In this document: positions 25,533 through 38,927 of the stretch, in pieces
How the letters are laid out: every line of letters begins with the position of its first letter
Position numbering within the stretch: the stretch's first letter is position 1
NCBI RefSeq assembly: GCF_003704095.1
Contig: NW_020847681.1
Span: 124,001 to 188,000 of the forward strand
Reading direction: 5' to 3'
DNA: 64,000 nucleotides
Source of the DNA: Pocillopora damicornis
Taxonomy: Eukaryota
Notes under the pieces: generated by a model
The model's input: only the letters and a program-made list of their open reading frames with translations
What the model was told of the DNA's origin: nothing
Databases searched by the model: none
Made by a program: the position numbers and the translations under genes

Positions 25533-27684
25533 CTATGAAGTTTTTTGCCCATTACGTTCCTTCAGTTTATCCTCTAATAGCTTCAAACTCTCAATATTAC
25601 TTTTCGTTAGCCGCAAATACCTGCAGTTTCGCAGCTTTCTAAATTCTTCGTTTGTGAATTTGATTTCAGGAGGACTAGGCCAGGGATATCTTGGAGCTTT
25701 ATGGTCCATTTGTTGATACACATTGAGAAGCTGCTTTAATTTCATCAGCATTGATTGAATGCCACTGTCTCGATCATGGTTGCGATCAAAGGCAGCAGCA
25801 ATATGAGAAGTTGCACCCTGGGTTACGCAGTACTGCAAAAAATAGCGAAGAATGAAATGCCAGTTAAAGTATGACTTTATGTCGTGAGCTTTACAGTGGT
25901 CGCTAGGGAATAACTTACCATTAGGGCACAGGTTTTTAGTGTTAGGCTTGCCCGTGCACTCGTTATATCACCGAGTTCAGTTGAAAACTGGACAAGTAGT
26001 CTTGTGTTATTTGACTCCAATCTATTTATAGCGAACCTCCGTAATGTTATTTAATTTTTAATTTTATAACCATCTCAGTGTATTGCGAGAGGTTAGCTGA
26101 TAGTACTTCTTCTTCCGTTAAAAATCTACTTTTGTTAAAGCTGTTTAATTCAGTTATTGTAAGGGTAGAACAAACAAATTTCATGCCTGATATGACCTGA
26201 CGACTTACTTCCTGTCGATTGCCATTGCGATCAATCCCATGGACACGATATCCGTGGACGTGATGGGGGGCATGCTGACTAGATCTTGCAGGCTTCTCTT
26301 GCTTGTTAGCTTCATGAGGTAGAAAGTGATGATGGTTAACGATATTGTCTGGATGTAGCAGCCCATTGAAGGCGGGATTTTGGTGTGCAGCTCCCTCATT
26401 TGAAGCAGCGGCTGAGTGTGGCGTAAACAAAGGTGAATGGGTAGTATGAGGAAGATTTTCAGGTAAATGTGTGTACCTATGGTACCAATTACTGTCTTCA
26501 TCATGGTACTCATGTCTGTCGTGGACTGGAAACATTCTATCCAATCTGTGATAGAGATCACGTAGTTCTTCCTGTTTTGATCTGTTGTATATTATTGTGT
26601 CTTGTTCTCCAAAACTGCTTCTTCTGCTTCGACGATCTGAACAACTGTTCCTACGGCTTCTTCCCTCTTCAAGGCTATTCTTCCTACTTCTTGATGCCAG
26701 GAATCCACTTTGTTTTCCCCTATCACGTTTGTGATAATTTGCAGCAGCTATACCCAGATTAGCGCCAAAGTCCCATTTGTGGGCGCCTACACCTGGTGCA
26801 TGCGCTGTGTAAGCGTCAACACCTCTTGGTGAGTGGCTTTTTTTATCGTCCTCGATGCTGGAAGCTCTACTTCTTCCTTGGTTCTTTTGATGGATGTTGG
26901 TGTTTGTGAACCCTTGTGTCCACTCGTAGCGAGGTGGATTTTCCTCAACCTCTAAGCTTCTCCTTCGCCCTCCTCCAAAACAGTGCGAATCTTCGTGATC
27001 CTTTCTGCGTTTCTGTAAATCTTCTCTGCGGTTGTGATGGTGGTGAGGATGTTTAGAAGAATCCTCATGGCATGTGCAGGTATGTTTGTATTCTCTCCCC
27101 TGAGCATTTCGTGGCAAGTTGCAAATAACACAGGACATAAACGCCTGTGTCCTGTGAATTTCTGAGCCACCATCTCTTTTGGTCGGTTTTGGTACGGAAG
27201 GTAAGGCTATTGTCGTAAGTTGTTTTGGAGTGTTGGTTGAACTTGCCATCGGTGAAAGTGATATGATAACAGAGGCATCAGAGGGGCCTGCACACACTTT
27301 CACTGAAGTCTTTTTGTCACTGATTTCTGATTTGATTTTTACCTGAAGTTTTCTGTCGTGATATTCAGTCGGTTTTCGTGAATGCCGTTGCCCGTCACTT
27401 GCATGTTGATTTTCATAAAAACTTGGGCACCTTTCGGGATGAAAAGCAGAGCGCCCTTGGTTTTCGTGATGTCCAATATCTTCAAAGTGATCTTGCTTTG
27501 TATGCTGCAATCTTGTCAGTGTACTTAGTAACTCCCTCTCTTCTTTTCGGTAAACATGTGATTGGACATCTTTACAGGCCTCAAGGGTTCGTATCTCTTT
27601 ATCCAAGCTGAGCTTTCGGGCCTTGTTGGTAACGTGTAGGCCATAGAAGTTTCCTTCCGAAATGTGACGAATTTGTTTGAGCAT
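25533..27684 (-). CDS. Two-exon His/Arg/Ser-rich, largely disordered protein, CCDC190-like (N-terminal coiled coil plus C-terminal CRYLR motif), ~591 aa
   Basis: Exon 1 is 27684-26209 (donor GAA|GTAAGT); exon 2 is 25832-25533 (acceptor ttttgcag|TAC), phase 0. N-terminal LDKEIRTLEACKDVQSHVYRKEERELLSTLTRLQH and C-terminal EEFRKLRNCRYLR resemble the two conserved blocks of CCDC190/C1orf110 as remembered. Confidence 0.75.
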
Positions 27685-29540: not shown

Positions 29541-31646
29541 ACAAGCGTTTTTTCGCTCTTGAGGTCTTAAGCGTCAGATCGCTTGACAATGCCAACTCGC
29601 TTGGCTCAACAGCTCAAGACTTTAAAAGGTACTCTATTTCTCTATTTCTGTCAACTTTTCAAAAGTTTTGCATGGTGAGAATGAAACCAGATGACTATGA
29701 TAGCTAAACTAATAATTTACTGGGCTACCCTTTTTGCTTGCCGTATAATCTTTTAAAAAAAGGAAAATGATGTGCAACAAAGCACAGCGAGGAAAAGTTC
29801 CCGAGGTTTGGTCGATTTTCACATTATTAGGTGGAAATGAGCCCACGCTCCTCCTCCCGAGAAAAAAAGGTTAAGGCAGGCTTTGAGTTAGATTCAACAA
29901 CCGAAAAAAAAAGGCCCTATGAGTTGCGTGCGCGTACGTTCGCGCGTAAAATTCAAGACATGGCGACTGCGTTTCCGAAAATGACTCTTCAAGCATTTTA
30001 AGAACAAAAAAGGAAGAAAAATTTTAGTCGTGTGTATCCGTGTGTATTTGATGTGACTCGTATTTAGCCGTATCTTACACGTATGTCACTCATGGTAAGC
30101 GTGCGGTGTTTTAGTCATTATCTACGAGATACAATACCTCCGAGAAAAACATTTAAGTGCGTTTGATTTCCAGCTCATCGACAAGCAAAAAAGTTGTGTT
30201 CAATTTGTTGAAGAGGGTTGAAGTGTTTTGGAACCGAGCAAAGCAAGTGATAGAGAACAGCTTTTAAATCAATCAACTTACCATATTGTTCTGCTGTGTT
30301 GGCGATTATATCGGTGCGATTTCGTGATCACCAAAAGCAATAAAATTGATGTAACCTTAAACATTTCTATTTTATTGGTCATTGCCCCATTGTACAAATT
30401 GTAAGTAGACGAACCTTCTGCTTCACTTTACTAACTGAGCCGTTTTTTAATTATTTTTTTTTTTTTCGTTTCTTTCTTTCGATTGACGTTTGAATCAGTA
30501 AACGCCCTAACATCATCTCATCCTAAAAGGATGTGCGATACAACAAACAGATTTCTGTATGAAAATACCAATAAAAATATAAAAAACAAAACAAACAACC
30601 AAAAAATCAAAGATGGTGAGGTCCATAACCTTTTTGTAAAATTCCTTACGAAATTAATGGTACAGAGCTTTTCATTGTTTTTTTAGTGTTGCCAGGAATT
30701 TCGCTCCTCTTCTCTTAACTTGAATGAAAAGTTAACTGAATTACGAATCAAGTGAAGAAATTTCGTGTGGTTGAGTCAAATATCAATGCCCCACACACTC
30801 TATGTCGGTGCCCCTTTTTGTGGTTCAGGATTGTGCAATAATAGTGTCCACCAGATAGTAATTTTACACCAGAATCAAAGTTTGTTTACTTCACATTTTT
30901 TCACCCACGACGATGAAGGATGTTTCCATGGCTGACTGATAAGCGATCGTAAGTGATTGGCCATTGTTTTCATTCCTCGTAGAAGAAGAGATTTTTCATT
31001 GAATTTCCTCTTTTAGGAGAAATAATTTACCCTTTTTTTTTCTTTTTTTTTTTGTGTGGTGCTTTCTTTCTGATGTTTTCATTTTGCCGGATAGTTGAGC
31101 TACCCACGAGGGTCATAACTGTTTACACCACGTTTCTTGCAAATACTTTGTGTTAAGGCAGAGAAAAAAAATCAATGATAATGAAACATGTCTGTTTTGA
31201 TTACAGTTGTCTTTGGCTTATCGGCCAAATTCAGTCTTGCCTAAACACAAAAGCCGTATGAAAACTTAGGAATGTTATATGACATAGAGCGCACACTTTA
31301 TTTTGGGGATGTTTTCGAAAATAAATTTTACGATCAAAGGTCTTCCCCTTTCAAAAAGAAATTTTACGATAAAAGGTCTTCCCCCTTGCTCAAAAATTAT
31401 GATACCTTGAAACTTGTCCTAACAAACTTTGTTTGCATAGGATATCAAGCCTAAAAAAGCAATATTATCGCGACAGAAACTGTGGTTTTGAAATTATAGA
31501 ACAAGGGTTTTCTTATGATCTAAGTAGTGTCCATTTTTATTGACGCTAATTTTCTACAGACCTTGTTAATGATAAGTTGTCTTAAAATGGAACCTTTGTT
31601 GGCTGAGATGTGACCGACCACGCGCGCTTTAAGTAACATGATGAAG

Positions 31647-31753
31647 TATATAAATACTAAGTTGGATTAGTATGCTCTGCTCACTCTATGAATAGCATCG
31701 ATCCGGGAATAAGTCCGCCCAGGAAGGCTTCTGCAGCATTACATAAGGTAAGG
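31647..31753 (+). promoter_or_regulatory. Candidate TATA promoter and non-coding first exon of the CPPGVWGC precursor (distal)
   Basis: TATATAAA at 31647-31654 and a strong donor AAG|GTAAGG at 31747/31748. The coding exon has an acceptor (tttttag| 35850) 4 nt before the ATG and so needs an upstream exon. Confidence 0.4.
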
Positions 31754-34039
31754 CCGGCTTAACGACATCAGTCGCTTGTGCATTTTTTCGAGAACAAATG
31801 AAACATCATTTGGATCAAAATCACCGATTTGAAATTAAGCAAATCATCCCACTAATACTTCGAGCGGTTTTGTTTCCTTTTCTCTTGGCATTCGAGAATG
31901 GAAGTACTCCTAACAAACTTAAAAAAAATACTTTTTGATTCCGTTGTATGTAAAAATGAAGATTAAAATCATAATTTTAGTGTAAGAGTTTGTTTTAGCA
32001 GGCTTCTGCACTAAAATGACACATTATAGGGACACATTGGTGTTTGTTGTTCCTTTTTTTTCGGTACAAAGGCGCTGTTACACTTCCTGGTCATTCAGTC
32101 CCGGACCTTTTCCCGAGAGATGCAGATCCTACTTTCTTCTCGTAGCTTTCAAGTTTGGAAGGCAAAATAATAAAGCACCAAAGATAAAAAAAACAAACCT
32201 ACTCTAGAATTTTCTGTAATTGTTGTATCTGTGTTAGGTAAGAGAAGGGCACGAGAATTTACTTAAGATTTAGGGCTTTGTCTAGCAACGTAGGGTGAAG
32301 TGAAAAATTTTGAAGATCGTATTTTTTAATATAGATTTTAAAATTTGGAAAGGAGAGAAGCGACTTCATTTTTCCAGAATAGGACTCACGGTAATTGTAA
32401 TTGGGTATTCCGCTTATTATACTTTTAAAAAAAAGAGCGAAATTTCTTTCTGTTTGGTTGCCTGTCACGGCGAGCCATTTCAACCAAAAAGCTTGTCGTA
32501 GTTACTCAGCAGTAGTCGTGATACTTTCAGTTGAAGTTGGATACTTACGAGCGATATATGTGTAGGTTTTCAAAGCATTTTTGTGGAGTTTAAAGATGCC
32601 TTAAGTTTTCAGTACAGTTGTTACTTATCGGTTTTCTGTGGAGAGGGTTGCATTCTTAGTGCTTTTCTTAACAGCTGTAAGCTGTTAGTTTATGTTCACC
32701 AACTATTCCTATTCACACCTTAACGTCTCGAAACCTGTCCATGTCTCATTCATTCAACGCCATTTCTCGCGCTCATACACCATCTTTTAACTTCATTGAT
32801 TACGCGAGAAGAAGTCTTGATACTGAAAAGTTGGTTTAATGAAAGTAACGACTTTTTGTATGTAAATTTGATCGCACGATTAAAAAGCGGCGTTCAAATC
32901 TCTTATCATAAATTTAGATTGGTCATCCCGTTCAAAGTAATTCAGGTTTAGTTCAGGTGTCGAATCTTCTTTTCTGTTTGAACTGGTTGGTGTCATGTTT
33001 AAGATGTAATATTTTCTACAATCTCCCGAACAAGAGATTTTTTTTTTGTTTGCGGCCTCTGTACCATGTTCCTTCAAAATCCTACCAACAACGCATTTAT
33101 GTCATTTTGTGGTTCTTCTGGATTAAGGCGATATGAAAGGTTCCAAAACAAACGATATACAGCACAATAAATTTGGGAAAAATCCTACTAATTTTAGAAA
33201 TCGGAAAGTTTCAGCTGCTGATTCATCCTTGGAATGCGGGTTTTATGTAAAAACGCATCCGGTTTGCACGAGATGAATTATTGGGAAACAGAATTTCCTT
33301 ACTTTGGTAAATCGTCAACGCAGGCATCTTCAGTCAAACCGACAAGGCAAACACATTTTATTCAACCTTAGTAAAAGTATTCAGTTTTGACAGAATATTG
33401 GTTTTGCTGTCAGAGAAAGTCACCAAAGGTCTTAAAGCTTTTAAATCTAATCGCAGCTATGATATACGTCAGTATCTTAATCTTAACCGCAGAAACCAAC
33501 AAATATAGTTTGCCTCAGCCATGAAAACTATTGTGAGGAAAATTGATCTAAACACATAGGTGAAAAACACCTGTTTCCTAAGGAAAGAAGAAAATTTTGA
33601 AAACGAGAGGCAAAAGAAGCTTGTGTAAAACTAACAGGTGTAAATCGTATGAAAATAGATGAAAAATTTTCGAAGTGTTCTTGGTTAGTTCGAATTGTCA
33701 TCAGTGAATTTCTGCACTACCTGCGGTCATCATATTTCATGAAGAAGGGTCTTTGTGAGAACGCAATTAAGATGTCGAAATTTAATCTTCTGTGATTATA
33801 TTGAGGCAAAGTGAGTAGGCACGGAATTCAAAAGGGAACTCGTAAAATATGTTTCTGAGTTTGATAAAGAAGCATCTTCCACTTGCCTTATCAGCGGGTT
33901 ACCCTAAGATGTCGATAAAAATCTCATGATAGTTTCTTTGCCATGAAATTAGCCTGCTAATTGGCATGTATTCGGATTTTAGTAGCTTGTAATTGTTTTT
34001 GTCTTTTTCAATTAGCTCTAAACCGCCGCCCACTGCACT

Positions 34040-34289
34040 AAACCAATCATGACTCTGAAAAACACCGACAAAATTAAAACTTCGTTAAAATCTTTTGTTT
34101 TACAGACTCAGGCTAAATGTGTATGACGCGCAACGGGGGAATTCATCAAATTCTTACATAAGGATATAAATCGTTGACAAACATTTCGCCAAATAGGACG
34201 CTTTCGACGGACGAACTCTACGACTCGCTTTAGTAAGAACCTCTCAACAAAGGAGACGATTTTCTGTCAAAGACATTTGAGAAGTAAGT
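34040..34289 (+). promoter_or_regulatory. Candidate CCAAT/CRE-half-site/TATA promoter and non-coding exon (proximal)
   Basis: CCAAT at ~34043, TGACG at ~34124, TATAAA at 34165-34170, donor GAA|GTAAGT at 34283/34284. Confidence 0.4.
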
Positions 34290-35854
34290 TGAGGATAGTA
34301 ACACCACAGATATATTACTATCGGTTAGGAAACCTTAATTTGTCAATGTTGTTTGTCATGGTCTATGGACAGTTTCTATGAGAATTAAGGCACATCGTCT
34401 CTCTCTTTTTTTTTTCTTGTTTTATCCTGAGAAAATAATCTTTTCATTCAGATCCATGAAGAGAGATTTGGTTTTTCTGTAGATGTGAGTGTTTTGACAT
34501 CTGTGTTTGGTATTATTTTATTACTCCAATGGCTTTGTTTATGCATCCTTTCATTTTTTTGTATCGGCTTAAGTGAGGAGGTCAAAACAAAGAGAAATAT
34601 CTTCACATTAACAATAGACACGCGAATTGACTTTTGTCCATGAAATGTGGCGGCCATTATAAGTTTTATGAAAACTACTAATTCTCAGTTCAATTTTTTC
34701 AACACAATTTCCTATATTATTTTTTTTAACATTGGGATGGCGTTTAAGCCTTTAAAAATAATTTTTCTTAGCATCCAATGTGTTTCAATGTATCACATCC
34801 ATTGTGCAAAAGCTTTTAGCTTACTTTTTTGTCATAAGTGATATCAGTCACTTTCTCTTTCGTGGCCATGTGACAAAAAGTCATCTTGTGGTTTTTCTTC
34901 AGTGATTTCTCTCAAATAATGAACACTCTCCGTAATGCAACCTCTTTTTAATGTTCCTTGAGAGGCTGTAGGTTTTGCAGACTTAAAAAGTTCCTCCTTT
35001 TCCAGGATGTATCACATATTCACCTCTATTCGGAGAATTTTGTGTCGGCAAAATGTCAAAAGAATTGTGTATCTCGGTTAAAAACCGCAAGTTCACTCCA
35101 CCTACACCTGCCTCGTCAGTTAGCAATCATTTCTGTACTTGAAAAAAAAAAAGTTTATATCCACTTCTTTCACTCTCTTCACCTCCTCACTTCTTTCATT
35201 CACTAGTTGGTGTGACTGTTCATTACAGATGTTATTTTTCTAATACTCGGTTTTGTTTTGCTTTTTCTCATGTCTGTTGGACGTATAAATTTTACAACGT
35301 GTTCGAGTTTTCAGAGCTGTCTACAACCATTTGCGAACTGACACCCCGAATGCTTTTTACTGAAATACAGTTGAAACTCAGTTTCATAGGCGACCACCCT
35401 TGGTGCCACATTTAGGCATGCATGTGGTTGCTTACAAAAGGAAAGACCGTTAAAGATCTGAACTTTTGTCATTCATGCACAGAAGCTGCTTTTTAAAGCA
35501 GGATCGGAATGAAAGTAATATTCTCACCCACTTGACACCCAAGAGTGAGGAGAAGAAGTCGCTTACAGGATATTTGAAACAATAGGTGATAGTTTCAATC
35601 AACAAGTCTCAGAAGGGGTCTGACTTGACTTAGAAAAATTTGGCATGCGGGATAAAAGTAGACGCTTACCCTACGGATGGACCTTTAATGGGAGGGTTTT
35701 ACTAAATGACTGAACAAAATTCCTTTTAAACAATAGCTAAAATGAGTATTCATGCGGCGAATCATTTATTTCTGTGTTTCTCAGACACTATTTCTTAAGG
35801 CGAGTGTCTTGTGCAACTTTTCTAAGTTACGTGGTGCGTTTCTTTTTTAGAAAA

Positions 35855-36589
35855 ATGAGTTGGACCATATTTGCCGTGATCACGATCGTTGCCCTTTCGC
35901 ACGAAGCAACCAGTAATCCACTGAGAAGAAAAAGGGTGTGGGAGGGTGACTGCCCTCCAGGAGTCTGGGGATGTAAGCGCTCGGAAACAGAGAACAAGAG
36001 AACCGAAGACGATTGTCCTCCAGGAGTTTGGGGATGCAAGAAGAACGTCATCGAGGAACTGGATGAAGACTGTCCCCCCGGTGTGTGGGGCTGTAAGCGG
36101 AACTTCGAAATGAAGAGAAGCAACGACGAAGACTGCCCACCTGGAGTCTGGGGCTGCAAACGAGGTCTATTTGCCTCTGTCAAAAATTGGTTTAAGTCAA
36201 AAGGAAGATCTACGCGGTCAGTAAAAAGCAATAATGATGAAGATTGTCCCCCCGGAGTGTGGGGATGCAAAAGAGAAATAAAAAAGGAAGAGTTAGGCGA
36301 AGAAGGATGCCCACCAGGGGTCTGGGGTTGTAAGAAAGACTCGGTCGAAAATGATTGTCCTCCTGGGGTCTGGGGCTGTAAGAAAGATCAGATTGAAGAA
36401 GATTGTCCACCAGGGGTCTGGGGCTGTAAGAAAGATCAGATTGAAGAAGATTGTCCACCAGGGGTCTGGGGCTGCAAACGAAACGAGGTCCCTGAGAAAA
36501 AGGAAAAGGAAGATGATGAGAAAAAAGATGAATTAGCTGCTAAAGCCGAGTGCCCACCAGGGGTCTGGGGTTGCAAGAGAGATAATTAA
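35855..36589 (+). CDS. Neuropeptide precursor (GLWamide/Wamide-related) with 10 copies of the Cys-flanked peptide CPPGVWGC, 244 aa
   Basis: ATG at 35855 follows a splice acceptor. Hydrophobic signal peptide MSWTIFAVITIVALSHEATS, RRKR furin site, then ten CPPGVWGC units, each preceded by acidic spacer residues and followed by KR/KK. This is typical cnidarian preprohormone architecture. AATAAA at ~36813. Confidence 0.93.
   Translation: MSWTIFAVITIVALSHEATSNPLRRKRVWEGDCPPGVWGCKRSETENKRTEDDCPPGVWGCKKNVIEELDEDCPPGVWGCKRNFEMKRSNDEDCPPGVWGCKRGLFASVKNWFKSKGRSTRSVKSNNDEDCPPGVWGCKREIKKEELGEEGCPPGVWGCKKDSVENDCPPGVWGCKKDQIEEDCPPGVWGCKKDQIEEDCPPGVWGCKRNEVPEKKEKEDDEKKDELAAKAECPPGVWGCKRDN
36365..36474 (+). 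repeat. Perfect 48-bp coding tandem repeat (2.3 copies) inside the neuropeptide ORF
   Basis: ggggtctggggctgtaagaaagatcagattgaagaagattgtccacca is repeated exactly at 36365 and 36413, and partially at 36461. Confidence 0.9.
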
Positions 36590-37520
36590 TGATTTGAAAA
36601 GTTACCAGATTAACTGAGTGACTTTTGTCAAGATAAGTCAACATTGGACGACCTTATGACTGTGTCTAGTATCATGCCGACTGTATAAATTACACTTTAC
36701 TACATATTGATTTTGATTATTGCAATTCTAAGTAAGCTATGAACAGAGTGTATTTTTAAGTTAAGAAATAATGTTCAAGTAACAGAAGTTAGAGACCAAT
36801 GGACTGTCAACAAATAAAAGTTTGAAACCCAGGTGAATCTAAATGTTAGTCAGTTTTGCACAGTTTGTACTGTTCATCTCCTTTTTTCTTACTTTTGGTT
36901 TGGCCTGTACCTATTTTATCCAATTGATAACAAAGTTATCATACTTGCACTCGAGAAGAAAATTTATTTCTTTATTAAGTTCAACCATAAAAAAAGGTAT
37001 GCGCCGTGTGTTCCTGACGTGGAAACAAGAGGATGAGTTTCCAGTCCAAATCTTTTCTTGAGATCGTCATATGCGTTTCACCATAATTCGTTGTAAGACC
37101 ATTATATGGTGTCTTAGCGGATTTTTGAGAGTTAATGCTTGAGTTACTGTTCAAAGCCTCGTTTTCGGTTAAAATGTGGAAGAAGCTACGCTAAGCTCAT
37201 GAAAGGGCAGTGGGAGTGCAAGTAGTGGTCTATTAAATACGCTCGGTTCAAAATTGTCCCTTTTTAACTCGTGAATTGCGCGCATGCGCAAGAGCGAGTT
37301 ATAGATACGATGTGGGGAATGGCATTCGCTCGCTCGCTCGCTCGATTGGTCGATTCCTGTAAACTTTTTTTAGATTTTAGGCTTTTGAGTGCATTTGATA
37401 GTTTTTGGCGAGCAATAAACAGAAGAAATGGCGACCTTTGTTGCTAAGAATAGTGGTGGGGGTGAAAAAGAAGCCAATGATAATCTTAAAAGAGTTTTTT
37501 TTCGTTTTAGTTTCAACAAG

Positions 37521-37620
37521 NNNNNNNNNNNNNNNNNNNNNNNNNNNNNNNNNNNNNNNNNNNNNNNNNNNNNNNNNNNNNNNNNNNNNNNNNNNNNNNN
37601 NNNNNNNNNNNNNNNNNNNN
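37521..37620. other. Assembly gap (100 N)
   Basis: Run of N. Confidence 0.99.
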
Positions 37621-38927
37621 GTCAATTCACGAGTTTGCTCACAGAGCACTTTGATCTTACCTTATGCAGGGTATGAAAGTAGGCGTGTGGAGCGATAAAT
37701 TGGTGAGTGAAATGGCACGTACCAAGGCAAACGTGTACTTCATACGAGTATAACACTTACCGGCCTCGTTACAGTGTGACGTGTAACAAAAAATGACACC
37801 AATCTCTCATCCTACTCAGCTCCACAGAATAATGTTCATTTGAAGGTTAAAAGGTTTCTACTAAGTATTCATAGAACATTGCCAAAAGAGAACACACTTC
37901 ATTGTTTTGAAACAATTATATTAATTCACCAAGTCGTATAATAAATTTGCAATAAGTATAAGCTAATATATAAATATCCCTATATATATTTAACCCTATA
38001 ACTTCTATAAAGCCTATGAAAAATATTTCAGTAAAATCACTTCCTTAAAATCTTTTTTTTAATCAAAATATCATTTAATAAGTCCGTGTTGATTTTGGTG
38101 TTGTGTTGACAAGATCTGTTCCCTGATCTGATTCCCGTAGCGTAATTAAGAGATATCAGTTAATGATTATGATAAGGTGGACGTCAGGTCTAAAATGTCC
38201 CCAAGGAACCCGACCCTTCACTGCAAATTAAGGTTTACAGAAGAGAACCCGAGCATTGACTGAAACCTCAGTTCTTCCAGCCTGTCAAAACAAAGTGTGT
38301 AGTGGGTTCATCTAATCTTCTTCAACAAACCTGACTTCTCAATGGAGTTTTGAAAAACCACTATACAAGAGTTTGATCTTTTTTCAGGATTTCCAGTTTG
38401 ACTATCGATCTTACATTATCTTTTCATCTTTGCGGCGTGTCACTCTACACCTTCCCCAAAAACGGGTGGTGTGGAAAAAAAAAAGCTGTAATTTTTGTGC
38501 GCATGCGTAGATTATGTAGCTTTCAACTTTCCAGTTGAGGAAAATTGCCACGTTCACACGTTATCTATGACATTTTAGGTAAATTGGATTTAATTTAGTT
38601 CAAGGTGGCTCACATGCGTTCAAAACAAGTTTTGTATTTGAAAAAAAAAAAAAACAAAGCGCAAACCAATAAAATAGTGCACAATAGTGCGATAAAAAGC
38701 ATGAAATTTTCATTCAAAACCAAGCTATAAATACTTAGACATAACAACTCGCAAGTTCATTCGATTCTTTTAGAGCAAATGAATGTCGAACAGAGCTTGA
38801 CACTATGACAGTTGCAATAAACAGAAATGTCAAAACGAAAACAAAGAATGGTGATTAAAAATGTCTAATGAGTGATATAGTTGAATGATCTTCAATAAAA
38901 GCATTGAAATTCCAAGATGCCTGCCAT

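Follow-up and report, generated by a model that had tools for sequence, protein, structure and literature searches.

GLWamides are classic inducers of cnidarian metamorphosis; the Octocorallia reportedly have none. In prohormone processing a convertase cuts after KR or KK, a carboxypeptidase removes the basic residues, and the C-terminus is amidated only if a glycine is then exposed. Canonical GLWamide and GVWamide precursors (metamorphosin A; GPPGLWamide in stony corals; pQPPGVWamide in jellyfish) carry many copies of a PPG[LV]WG core in which the glycine, followed by R or KR, is the amide donor. Here we analyse a gene of the stony coral Pocillopora damicornis that shares this core and the multi-copy layout, but in which one cysteine stands after the glycine and another before the PP. 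The gene lies on a stretch of 64,000 nucleotides (NCBI RefSeq assembly GCF_003704095.1, contig NW_020847681.1, positions 124,001 to 188,000 of the forward strand), which we call the window and whose positions we use throughout. We document the anatomy of its sequence, strong purifying selection on its repeated units, its transcription, splicing and polyadenylation, and its orthology to NvLWamide-like, the 'GLWG peptide' precursor of the sea anemone Nematostella vectensis. We consider it highly probable that this coral ortholog is expressed as a two-exon polyadenylated mRNA and encodes a secreted prepropeptide that yields ten non-amidated ring peptides.

The closest described system is NvLWamide-like itself (Nv242283/NVE21167). 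Nakanishi & Martindale 2018 (PMC6152798) state that it yields QCPPGLWGC peptides, not GLWamides, and they absorbed their antiserum with the peptides KECPPGLWGC and KECLPGVWG. The targets of the neurogenic factor NvashA include this gene, which is expressed in defined neuron subtypes (Nematostella literature, including bioRxiv 10.1101/145623); Havrilak et al. (bioRxiv 10.1101/145623) use it as a marker of such subtypes, as do some two dozen papers published since. Thiel et al. (eLife 2024, PMC11087051) list NVE21167 as a 'GLWG peptide' precursor and used synthetic pyrQCPPGLWGC both in linear form and with a '2-9 cysteine bridge' (GLWGcc). By mass spectrometry they recorded two of its fragments, the spacer GFDIPIQA between KR and KK (PMC11087051 supplement) and QKTPEECPPGLWGC between KK and KR, the latter with the remark 'Disulphide bridge' (PMC11087051 supplementary file 1). 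The non-amidated, disulphide-bridged nature of NvLWamide-like products is therefore already in print and has been partly tested in Nematostella, and the product proposed in a first, sequence-only reading of this locus is not new: the inference was printed in 2018 (PMC6152798) and both linear and bridged peptides have been synthesised and screened (PMC11087051).

The table of Thiel et al. also lists a 'CCa' precursor, NVE15666 (CPPGLWC-GKKR), and the precursors NVE5329/NVE21426 (CPPGIWVC, CPPGVWTC; with disulphide flags) (PMC11087051), so that a whole Cys-ring superfamily has been catalogued for Nematostella. These share with the coral gene the idea of a CPPGxW...C ring, the multi-copy layout and the dibasic sites, but they are distinct loci: the CCa type has a 7-residue ring followed by glycine and is amidatable, whereas the NVE5329/NVE21426 type has an 8-residue ring in which T, V, S or A replaces the glycine. 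The surveys of Koch & Grimmelikhuijzen (PMC6909153, PMC7523074) report that all Hexacorallia have GLWamides and that jellyfish have PPGVWamides, and they describe further peptides presumed to carry a cystine ring. Two of their peptides, CXGQMCWFRamide (Cubozoa, Scyphozoa) and GPPCRWGCamide (Clytia), likewise come from multi-copy preprohormones and have two cysteines predicted to form a cystine ring; they are C-terminally amidated and differ in sequence, and their likeness to the window precursor is one without demonstrated homology. As to the suspicion that the precursor type had already been described, a description exists for the Nematostella ortholog; the main texts of these surveys do not mention a CPPGVWGC-type precursor. 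Within the literature searched, the string CPPGVWGC occurs in no paper we found (which does not imply its absence from subscription journals), GVWGC, PGVWTC and PGMWVC returned nothing relevant, and LWamide-like, GLWG and CCamide as whole words returned no coral paper.

The coral open reading frame (ORF) runs from an ATG at 35855 to a TAA at 36587-36589 on the forward strand and encodes 244 amino acids (direct reading and ORF list), within which a script counts exactly ten CPPGVWGC units. A dibasic pair directly follows every unit (KR in six, KK in four), and the residue before the unit is D in eight copies, G in one and E in one. With no Q before any coral unit, there is no reason to expect an N-terminal pyroglutamate like the one on synthetic pyrQCPPGLWGC. 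Cysteine occurs 20 times in the protein, always inside a unit, and the spacers between units have a high content of E, D and K. Strong hydrophobicity marks the N-terminus, MSWTIFAVITIVAL (Kyte-Doolittle mean over 11 residues of up to 2.8), which has a core WTIFAVITIVAL and small residues at possible -3/-1 positions; judged by hydropathy, it is signal-peptide-like. The exact protein sequence is contained in the ESM Atlas. A Pfam match to Zn_peptidase (16 bits against a cut-off of 23) is sub-threshold and was taken as chance.

The units themselves bear the mark of strong purifying selection. Among the ten 24-nt unit cores, variation is confined to the seven degenerate third positions, all seven of which vary among copies (Cys TGC/TGT; Pro CCT/CCC/CCA; Gly GGA/GGT/GGG/GGC; Val GTC/GTT/GTG). 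Relating the cores takes no fewer than 12 substitutions, every one of them synonymous, with no amino-acid change; if changes hit random sites, the rough probability of such an all-synonymous pattern is about 3e-8. The back-translated pattern TGYCCNCCNGGNNNNTGG has 10 matches in the 64-kb window, all within the ORF, with 0 expected from 100 shuffles. A 48-nt tandem array covers units 6-9, so some of the copies arose recently, and in the alignment the homologs have 7-10 units, with the differences falling exactly at this array. The sequence-only reading had proposed a signal peptide and ten invariant units with free codon variation and KR/KK sites, and a multi-copy propeptide in which amidation is blocked in every copy; both proposals stand, the latter because a cysteine lies between glycine and KR/KK in 10/10 units.

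Now we consider how this gene relates to others. A word-indexed protein search returned 32 proteins at E<=0.01, and an exhaustive HMMER search gave 65 matches, which we sorted by motif. The top protein matches are unnamed coral-like sequences and OS493_030016 of Desmophyllum pertusum (E 1e-108 to 6e-82, 58-72% identity), after which come the Nematostella 'LWamide neuropeptides' (P0006, E 3e-42) and a CPPGIWGC protein listed in a catalogue of marine eukaryotes. NvLWamide-like is the reciprocal best match of the window protein: P0006 searched back against the P. damicornis genome finds its best place at window 35918-36532, and pairwise the two proteins are 39% identical (E 1e-51). In a seven-sequence alignment the units stand in register, position by position, and a long spacer starting KRG[LF][FL] follows unit 4 in Nematostella as it does in the four stony-coral homologs (P0001-P0004), its place being taken in the marine-catalogue protein P0005 by the short KRDSVIKIVKDEAED. 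The stony-coral homologs also share a conserved N-terminal segment, SNPL..R.RR. Coral and anemone precursors have in common a signal peptide, KR or KK after the units, no amidation glycine, a long spacer after unit 4 and a coding sequence held in a single exon. They differ in the units (ten in the coral, all CPPGVWGC, against eight C[LP]PG[VL]WGC units in Nematostella, six of them CLPGVWGC and two CPPGLWGC) and in the sequence of the central spacer.

The locus is conserved among corals as well. In Desmophyllum pertusum it is collinear with the window, the upstream minus-strand gene, the exon-1 region (33805-34139) and the coding sequence following in the same order, and the upstream neighbour is 57% identical over 522 aa to window 26047-27684. 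With Nematostella no convincing shared neighbour was found within +/-10 kb; one weak 24-aa high-scoring segment pair outside the gene was not counted. Full-length similarity with a reciprocal match, repeated C-x-P-G-[VLI]-W-G-C units with KR/KK directly after and no amidation glycine (10/10 window units, and the same pattern in P0001-P0006), a signal-like N-terminus by hydropathy, and the layout and coral locus together place the gene in the GLWG-precursor family, and it is the coral ortholog of sea-anemone NvLWamide-like.

It is not the GLWamide gene of this genome. That gene is a separate locus on contig C543 (locus L010 1036..1980, +), encoding 314 aa with a signal peptide and nine GPPGLWG-R units in which glycine is the amide donor and a single arginine the cleavage site; it agrees with the nine GPPGLWamide copies reported for P. 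damicornis (PMC7523074). Its detection needed the looser PPGLWG pattern, since PPGLWG-K-R has no match in the P. damicornis genome. The window protein matches this precursor at E 1e-15 through the repeated PPGxWG motif alone, and GLWamide precursors are not among its database matches at E<=0.01. The feature that defines a canonical GLWamide, a glycine directly before the basic site that gives a Trp-amide, is absent, as cysteine intervenes in 10/10 units. A separate canonical gene, which the sequence-only reading had asked to be looked for, is therefore present, and the suggestion that cyclisation had here replaced amidation, together with a co-evolved G-protein-coupled receptor (GPCR), finds no support: a sea anemone, stony corals and a hydrozoan all have the type, and the canonical GLWamide gene coexists with it.

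The distribution of related precursors supports the same point. The HMMER matches form a superfamily of CPPGxW(x)C precursors, in which the strict [PL]PG[VIL]WGC + K[KR] type comprises the window protein, P0001-P0006, P0009, P0029 of the hydrozoan Clytia, and single-unit fragments in which the second residues differ (P0070, CIPGIWGC-KR; P0031, CPVGIWGC-KP, which has no dibasic site). The remaining unit types are CPPGLWC-GKK(R), CPPGLWC-KR, CPPGYWC, CP[VT]GFWC and CPPG[IVM]W[TVSA]C. As mapped, the strict WGC type ranges over Scleractinia, Nematostella and Clytia. The Clytia hemisphaerica protein (UniRef A0A7M5WIK0, 'Cnidarian restricted protein') has two CPPGVWGC-KR units, plus a CPLGTWC and a C-terminal CPPGLWC, and a homology search with it returned no match besides itself. 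Since the WGC type is found in a sea anemone, stony corals and Clytia, these sequences indicate that it is an old parallel family beside the GLWamides, not a recent local change.

Orthologs of the NVE15666 and NVE5329/NVE21426 types are each present in the P. damicornis genome. The best matches of Nematostella CCa NVE15666 are two places on the contig of the window gene, 51-58 kb beyond it and outside the window: C4316:217365-218195 (-) (locus L002 1150..2205), an ORF with eight KR-CPPGLWC-GKKR units whose predicted product is a cyclic, amidated CPPGLWC-amide, and C4316:211573-211938 (-), a candidate place known from its match to the same query. That these CCa-type places share a contig with the window gene suggests that the Cys-ring genes arose long ago in tandem. 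The CPPGLWC ring of the former is identical to that of Be828 (GCPPGLWC) of Conus betulinus (PMC12631695). Further paralogs, on C3410 (L003, L005, L006) and C3883 (L007), are CPPGMWAC/CPPGVWSC precursors, a CPPGVWTC/CPPGIWVC precursor and CPPGYWC-KKKR precursors. One CPPGMWAC/CPPGVWSC paralog is P. damicornis pdam_00009039 (identical at 212/221 residues), and the Nematostella counterparts of CPPGIWVC/CPPGVWTC carry disulphide-bridge flags in peptidomics (PMC11087051).

Is the gene expressed? Most sampled 31-mers of the stretch are contained in 22 public runs, 11 of which are recorded as RNA (from at least three studies), and we aligned contigs from four runs of four studies (X1, X2, X7 and X15) to window 31500-37400. 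This RNA evidence consists of contigs, not reads, from which transcript level and strand cannot be read. In the polyA RNA runs X7 and X15 (two studies; depth 200 and 53), a GT..AG splice joint connects 34283 to 35851, skipping 1567 nt; the donor is GTAAGTT, and in the acceptor, TTTCTTTTTTAG, AG comes after a run rich in T. No ATG occurs in exon 1 (34179-34283 at the least), which makes 35855 the first AUG on the spliced mRNA; its context is AAAAAAATGA. The coding sequence is covered by contigs at high word depth in all four runs. Coverage of exon 2 extends over 35851-36394 and 36445-36837/36843, the break at 36394-36445 arising because an exact 48-nt repeat defeats assembly. Loose contig ends of pure A start at 36837 (X15) and 36843 (X2), 19-25 nt past the AATAAA. 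Splicing and polyA tails together identify a mature mRNA, and the transcript called for by the sequence-only reading is thus in hand.

Drawing on these data and on the Nematostella ortholog, we can outline how the products would arise. The signal peptide would be removed from the prepropeptide, prohormone convertases would cut after each KR or KK, and a carboxypeptidase would trim the basic residues, leaving every unit with the free carboxylate of a cysteine at its C-terminus. With cysteine rather than glycine exposed in ten units, amidation by the peptidylglycine amidating enzyme would be impossible. An intramolecular disulphide between the two cysteines of a unit would then close an 8-residue ring, C-P-P-G-V-W-G-C. 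Because each unit has two cysteines, with none elsewhere, and a disulphide is recorded in Nematostella, an intra-unit ring is likely in the coral by analogy; that the two cysteines can close a ring, as first proposed, agrees with the disulphide-bridged ortholog peptide listed in Nematostella (PMC11087051). The weakest step of the proposed pathway is the N-terminal cut, where trimming would either proceed to the acidic residue before the first cysteine, the common course in cnidarians, or leave some of the acidic spacer in place. One precursor would give ten ring peptides, which would most likely act as a neuronal signal on a receptor, working alongside the canonical GLWamide gene without replacing it. 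Neuronal expression, dibasic cleavage and the disulphide bridge have been shown by others in the Nematostella ortholog only; by orthology a neuronal signalling role is our best guess for the coral as well, and the exact mature form and function in the coral are what we infer.

Several observations weigh against this account. The sole ring-bearing peptide recorded in Nematostella, QKTPEECPPGLWGC, has a 6-residue N-terminal extension; rows near it are flagged 'Intermediate peptide?' and 'Medium fragmentation' (PMC11087051 supplement), and disulphide-bridged identifications are ranked 'uncertain', with ring fragmentation unresolved (PMC11087051 methods). A screen of 161 class-A GPCRs of Nematostella paired the peptides of 14 precursors with 31 receptors, and neither linear nor bridged GLWG is among the reported pairs, the single resolved mix showing GLWG and GLWGcc having both at background (PMC11087051); the signalling role is therefore putative. 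We found no peptidomics in the literature for any coral, and the RNA comes from whole-colony or mixed samples. In runs X1 and X2, moreover, a contig continues unbroken from 35483/35491 into the coding sequence, starting inside the intron, and this form of the transcript carries upstream ATGs, all of which open short ORFs only. A weak joint, 34484 to 35483 (GT..AG, depth 6), was also seen. The presence of 35483-35850 in transcripts could be due to an alternative start or promoter, to retention of part of the intron, or to a species or strain difference.

The alternative that survives best concerns the N-terminal cut. Instead of the bare octapeptide assumed in the sequence-only reading, the mature products may be longer, keeping an acidic spacer before the ring (e.g. 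NVIEELDED-CPPGVWGC), such that ten different tails are presented on one invariant ring and the bare octapeptide is not the active form. The Nematostella peptide just described was cut at KK and KR with its acidic residues untrimmed, leaving N-terminal trimming to inference, and the related CPPGIWVC precursors in the table of Thiel et al. also have long N-terminal extensions. Yet the ring never varies, whereas the spacers diverge freely among copies and species, which places selection on the ring; all ten units are preceded by D, E or G, which are listed N-terminal processing sites of cnidarian preprohormones (PMC6909153); and the 'Intermediate peptide?' flags on rows near this peptide, like the 'uncertain' rank of disulphide-bridged identifications, also weigh against the longer form (PMC11087051). 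We regard longer products as possible, though rather doubtful.

Much less probable, in our estimate quite unlikely, is a non-neuronal secreted product, whether a toxin or defence peptide similar to the contryphans, a precursor of multiple antimicrobial peptides, or a matrix or adhesive protein cross-linked by disulphides. Cone-snail venom does contain single-disulphide Pro/Trp rings of the same size class, and in contryphans and Be828 (GCPPGLWC) a Pro-rich ring has Trp beside the closing Cys, as in the coral unit (PMC12631695); by nuclear magnetic resonance, the Pro-Pro ring of the contryphan-like Be828 adopts a defined beta-turn (PMC12631695). Contryphans, however, belong to mollusc venom: each precursor bears a single copy, the ring has 7 residues, and the C-terminus is typically amidated and D-amino acids are typically present, whereas the coral ring has 8 residues ending WGC (against PWC), ten copies, no amidation signal and a cnidarian host (contryphan features from PMC12631695). 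We accordingly rejected membership, and the likeness is convergent, not one of relatives. The nearest protein-language-model neighbours in the ESM Atlas are multi-copy apidaecin precursors (score 0.76) and a fungal hypothetical protein (0.75), both below the level at which such scores count, and the failure to find a receptor for the Nematostella peptides also speaks for a non-neuronal product. Set against this are the expression of the Nematostella ortholog in defined neuron subtypes as an NvashA target, the dibasic site after every unit with processed fragments seen by mass spectrometry in Nematostella, which disfavour an uncut structural protein, and the pairing of two cysteines per unit with none elsewhere, which favours rings within units over matrix cross-links. 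Finally, a chance ORF or decaying functionless repeat, to which one might be led by the general caution that repeats can generate ORFs and by a 147-aa ORF on the opposite strand, is ruled out by the all-synonymous unit changes, by a spliced, polyadenylated and abundant transcript, and by conservation in Nematostella and other corals with synteny in Desmophyllum.

The features of the ring-peptide gene are collected in Table 1.

Table 1. Features of the coral NvLWamide-like gene, in window positions.
Feature	Position	Strand	Basis
TATAAA-like box, just upstream of exon 1	34165-34170	+	sequence inspection
Exon 1, non-coding 5' untranslated region; start approximate (furthest 5' base in an RNA contig)	34179..34283	+	X7 (34179-34283) and X15 (34216-34283), joined to 35851
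Intron, 1567 nt, GTAAGT...polypyrimidine tract + AG	34284..35850	+	RNA contig joint
Intron part included in transcripts of some runs	35483..35850	+	contigs of X1, X2
Exon 2, entire coding sequence + 3' untranslated region	35851..36840	+	RNA contigs
Coding sequence, LWamide-like (GLWG-type) prepropeptide, 244 aa + TAA	35855..36589	+	ORF reading; 39% identity to Nematostella NvLWamide-like
Signal-peptide-like N-terminus (~aa 1-16/20), then short pro-segment ending RRKR	35855..35914	+	hydropathy; SNPL..R.RR segment conserved in stony-coral homologs
Unit 1 CPPGVWGC, then KR	35951..35974	+	pattern search + script
Unit 2 CPPGVWGC, then KK	36014..36037	+	pattern search + script
Unit 3 CPPGVWGC, then KR	36071..36094	+	pattern search + script
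Unit 4 CPPGVWGC, then KR	36134..36157	+	pattern search + script
Long central spacer KR-GLFASVKNWFKSKGRSTRSVKSNNDED (aa 102-130)	36158..36244	+	position and start conserved among homologs
Unit 5 CPPGVWGC, then KR	36245..36268	+	pattern search + script
Unit 6 CPPGVWGC, then KK	36308..36331	+	pattern search + script
Unit 7 CPPGVWGC, then KK	36356..36379	+	pattern search + script
Unit 8 CPPGVWGC, then KK	36404..36427	+	pattern search + script
Unit 9 CPPGVWGC, then KR	36452..36475	+	pattern search + script
Unit 10 CPPGVWGC, then KR-DN-stop	36551..36574	+	pattern search + script
48-nt tandem array over units 6-9, recent duplication of unit + spacer, 3.7 copies, 87% matches	36299..36474	+	repeat analysis
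AATAAA polyadenylation signal	36813..36818	+	sequence; polyA tails at 36837, 36843

The central spacer deserves a comment of its own. Its start, GLF[AG]SV.[NS]W[FY], is common to the window protein and the four stony-coral homologs P0001-P0004, and in all of these it contains a glycine followed by K or R (e.g. ...WFKSK-G-R), a pattern that might allow this spacer to be released as an additional peptide with an amidated end. In Nematostella the spacer found here is different and rich in Tyr. Two further places lie outside the gene. Upstream, window 26047-27684 (-) holds a 545-aa single-exon ORF with no Pfam match, whose Desmophyllum counterpart has the same relative position and orientation; we read it as a conserved coral gene, to which no function is assigned. 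Downstream, window 37213-37400 is matched by RNA contigs at word depth 500-9700 with many variant letters, loose ends at 37258-37266 and a 59-nt skip (37305 to 37365). It adjoins an assembly gap (an N run at about 37500-37650) and has the look of a mobile or highly repeated element, or else of an unrelated RNA in high abundance.

We return to what the ring-peptide gene means for its family. The same octapeptide followed by KR occurs in P. damicornis and in Clytia hemisphaerica, and the coral has at least four other unit types. On this basis we tentatively raise the possibility that the CPPG[VIL]WGC ring is an ancient pan-cnidarian signalling peptide, a branch of a Cys-ring PPGxW superfamily sister to the GLWamides, with receptors of its own and perhaps a role in coral larval settlement. 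The main literature may not have dealt with such rings as one family. New here, in that we found no mention of them in the main texts searched, are the identical octapeptide of coral and hydrozoan, and so across the Anthozoa-Medusozoa split, the size of the Cys-ring superfamily and the partial clustering of its genes on one contig.

Because the non-amidated, disulphide-bridged nature of such products had already been stated and tested in Nematostella, the gene does not open a new class. Its interest is that the coral gene, the ortholog of a Nematostella neuron marker in wide use, is intact, well expressed and strongly constrained by purifying selection, and that P. damicornis has a whole set of Cys-ring paralogs beside its canonical GLWamide gene. 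Since GLWamides induce metamorphosis, a second set of PPGxW peptides is relevant to the biology of coral settlement, and cyclic CPPGVWGC is a defined candidate peptide for coral workers. If the pan-cnidarian possibility were true, the GLWamides of cnidarians would have a sister system acting through receptors of its own, perhaps with a role in the settlement of coral larvae.

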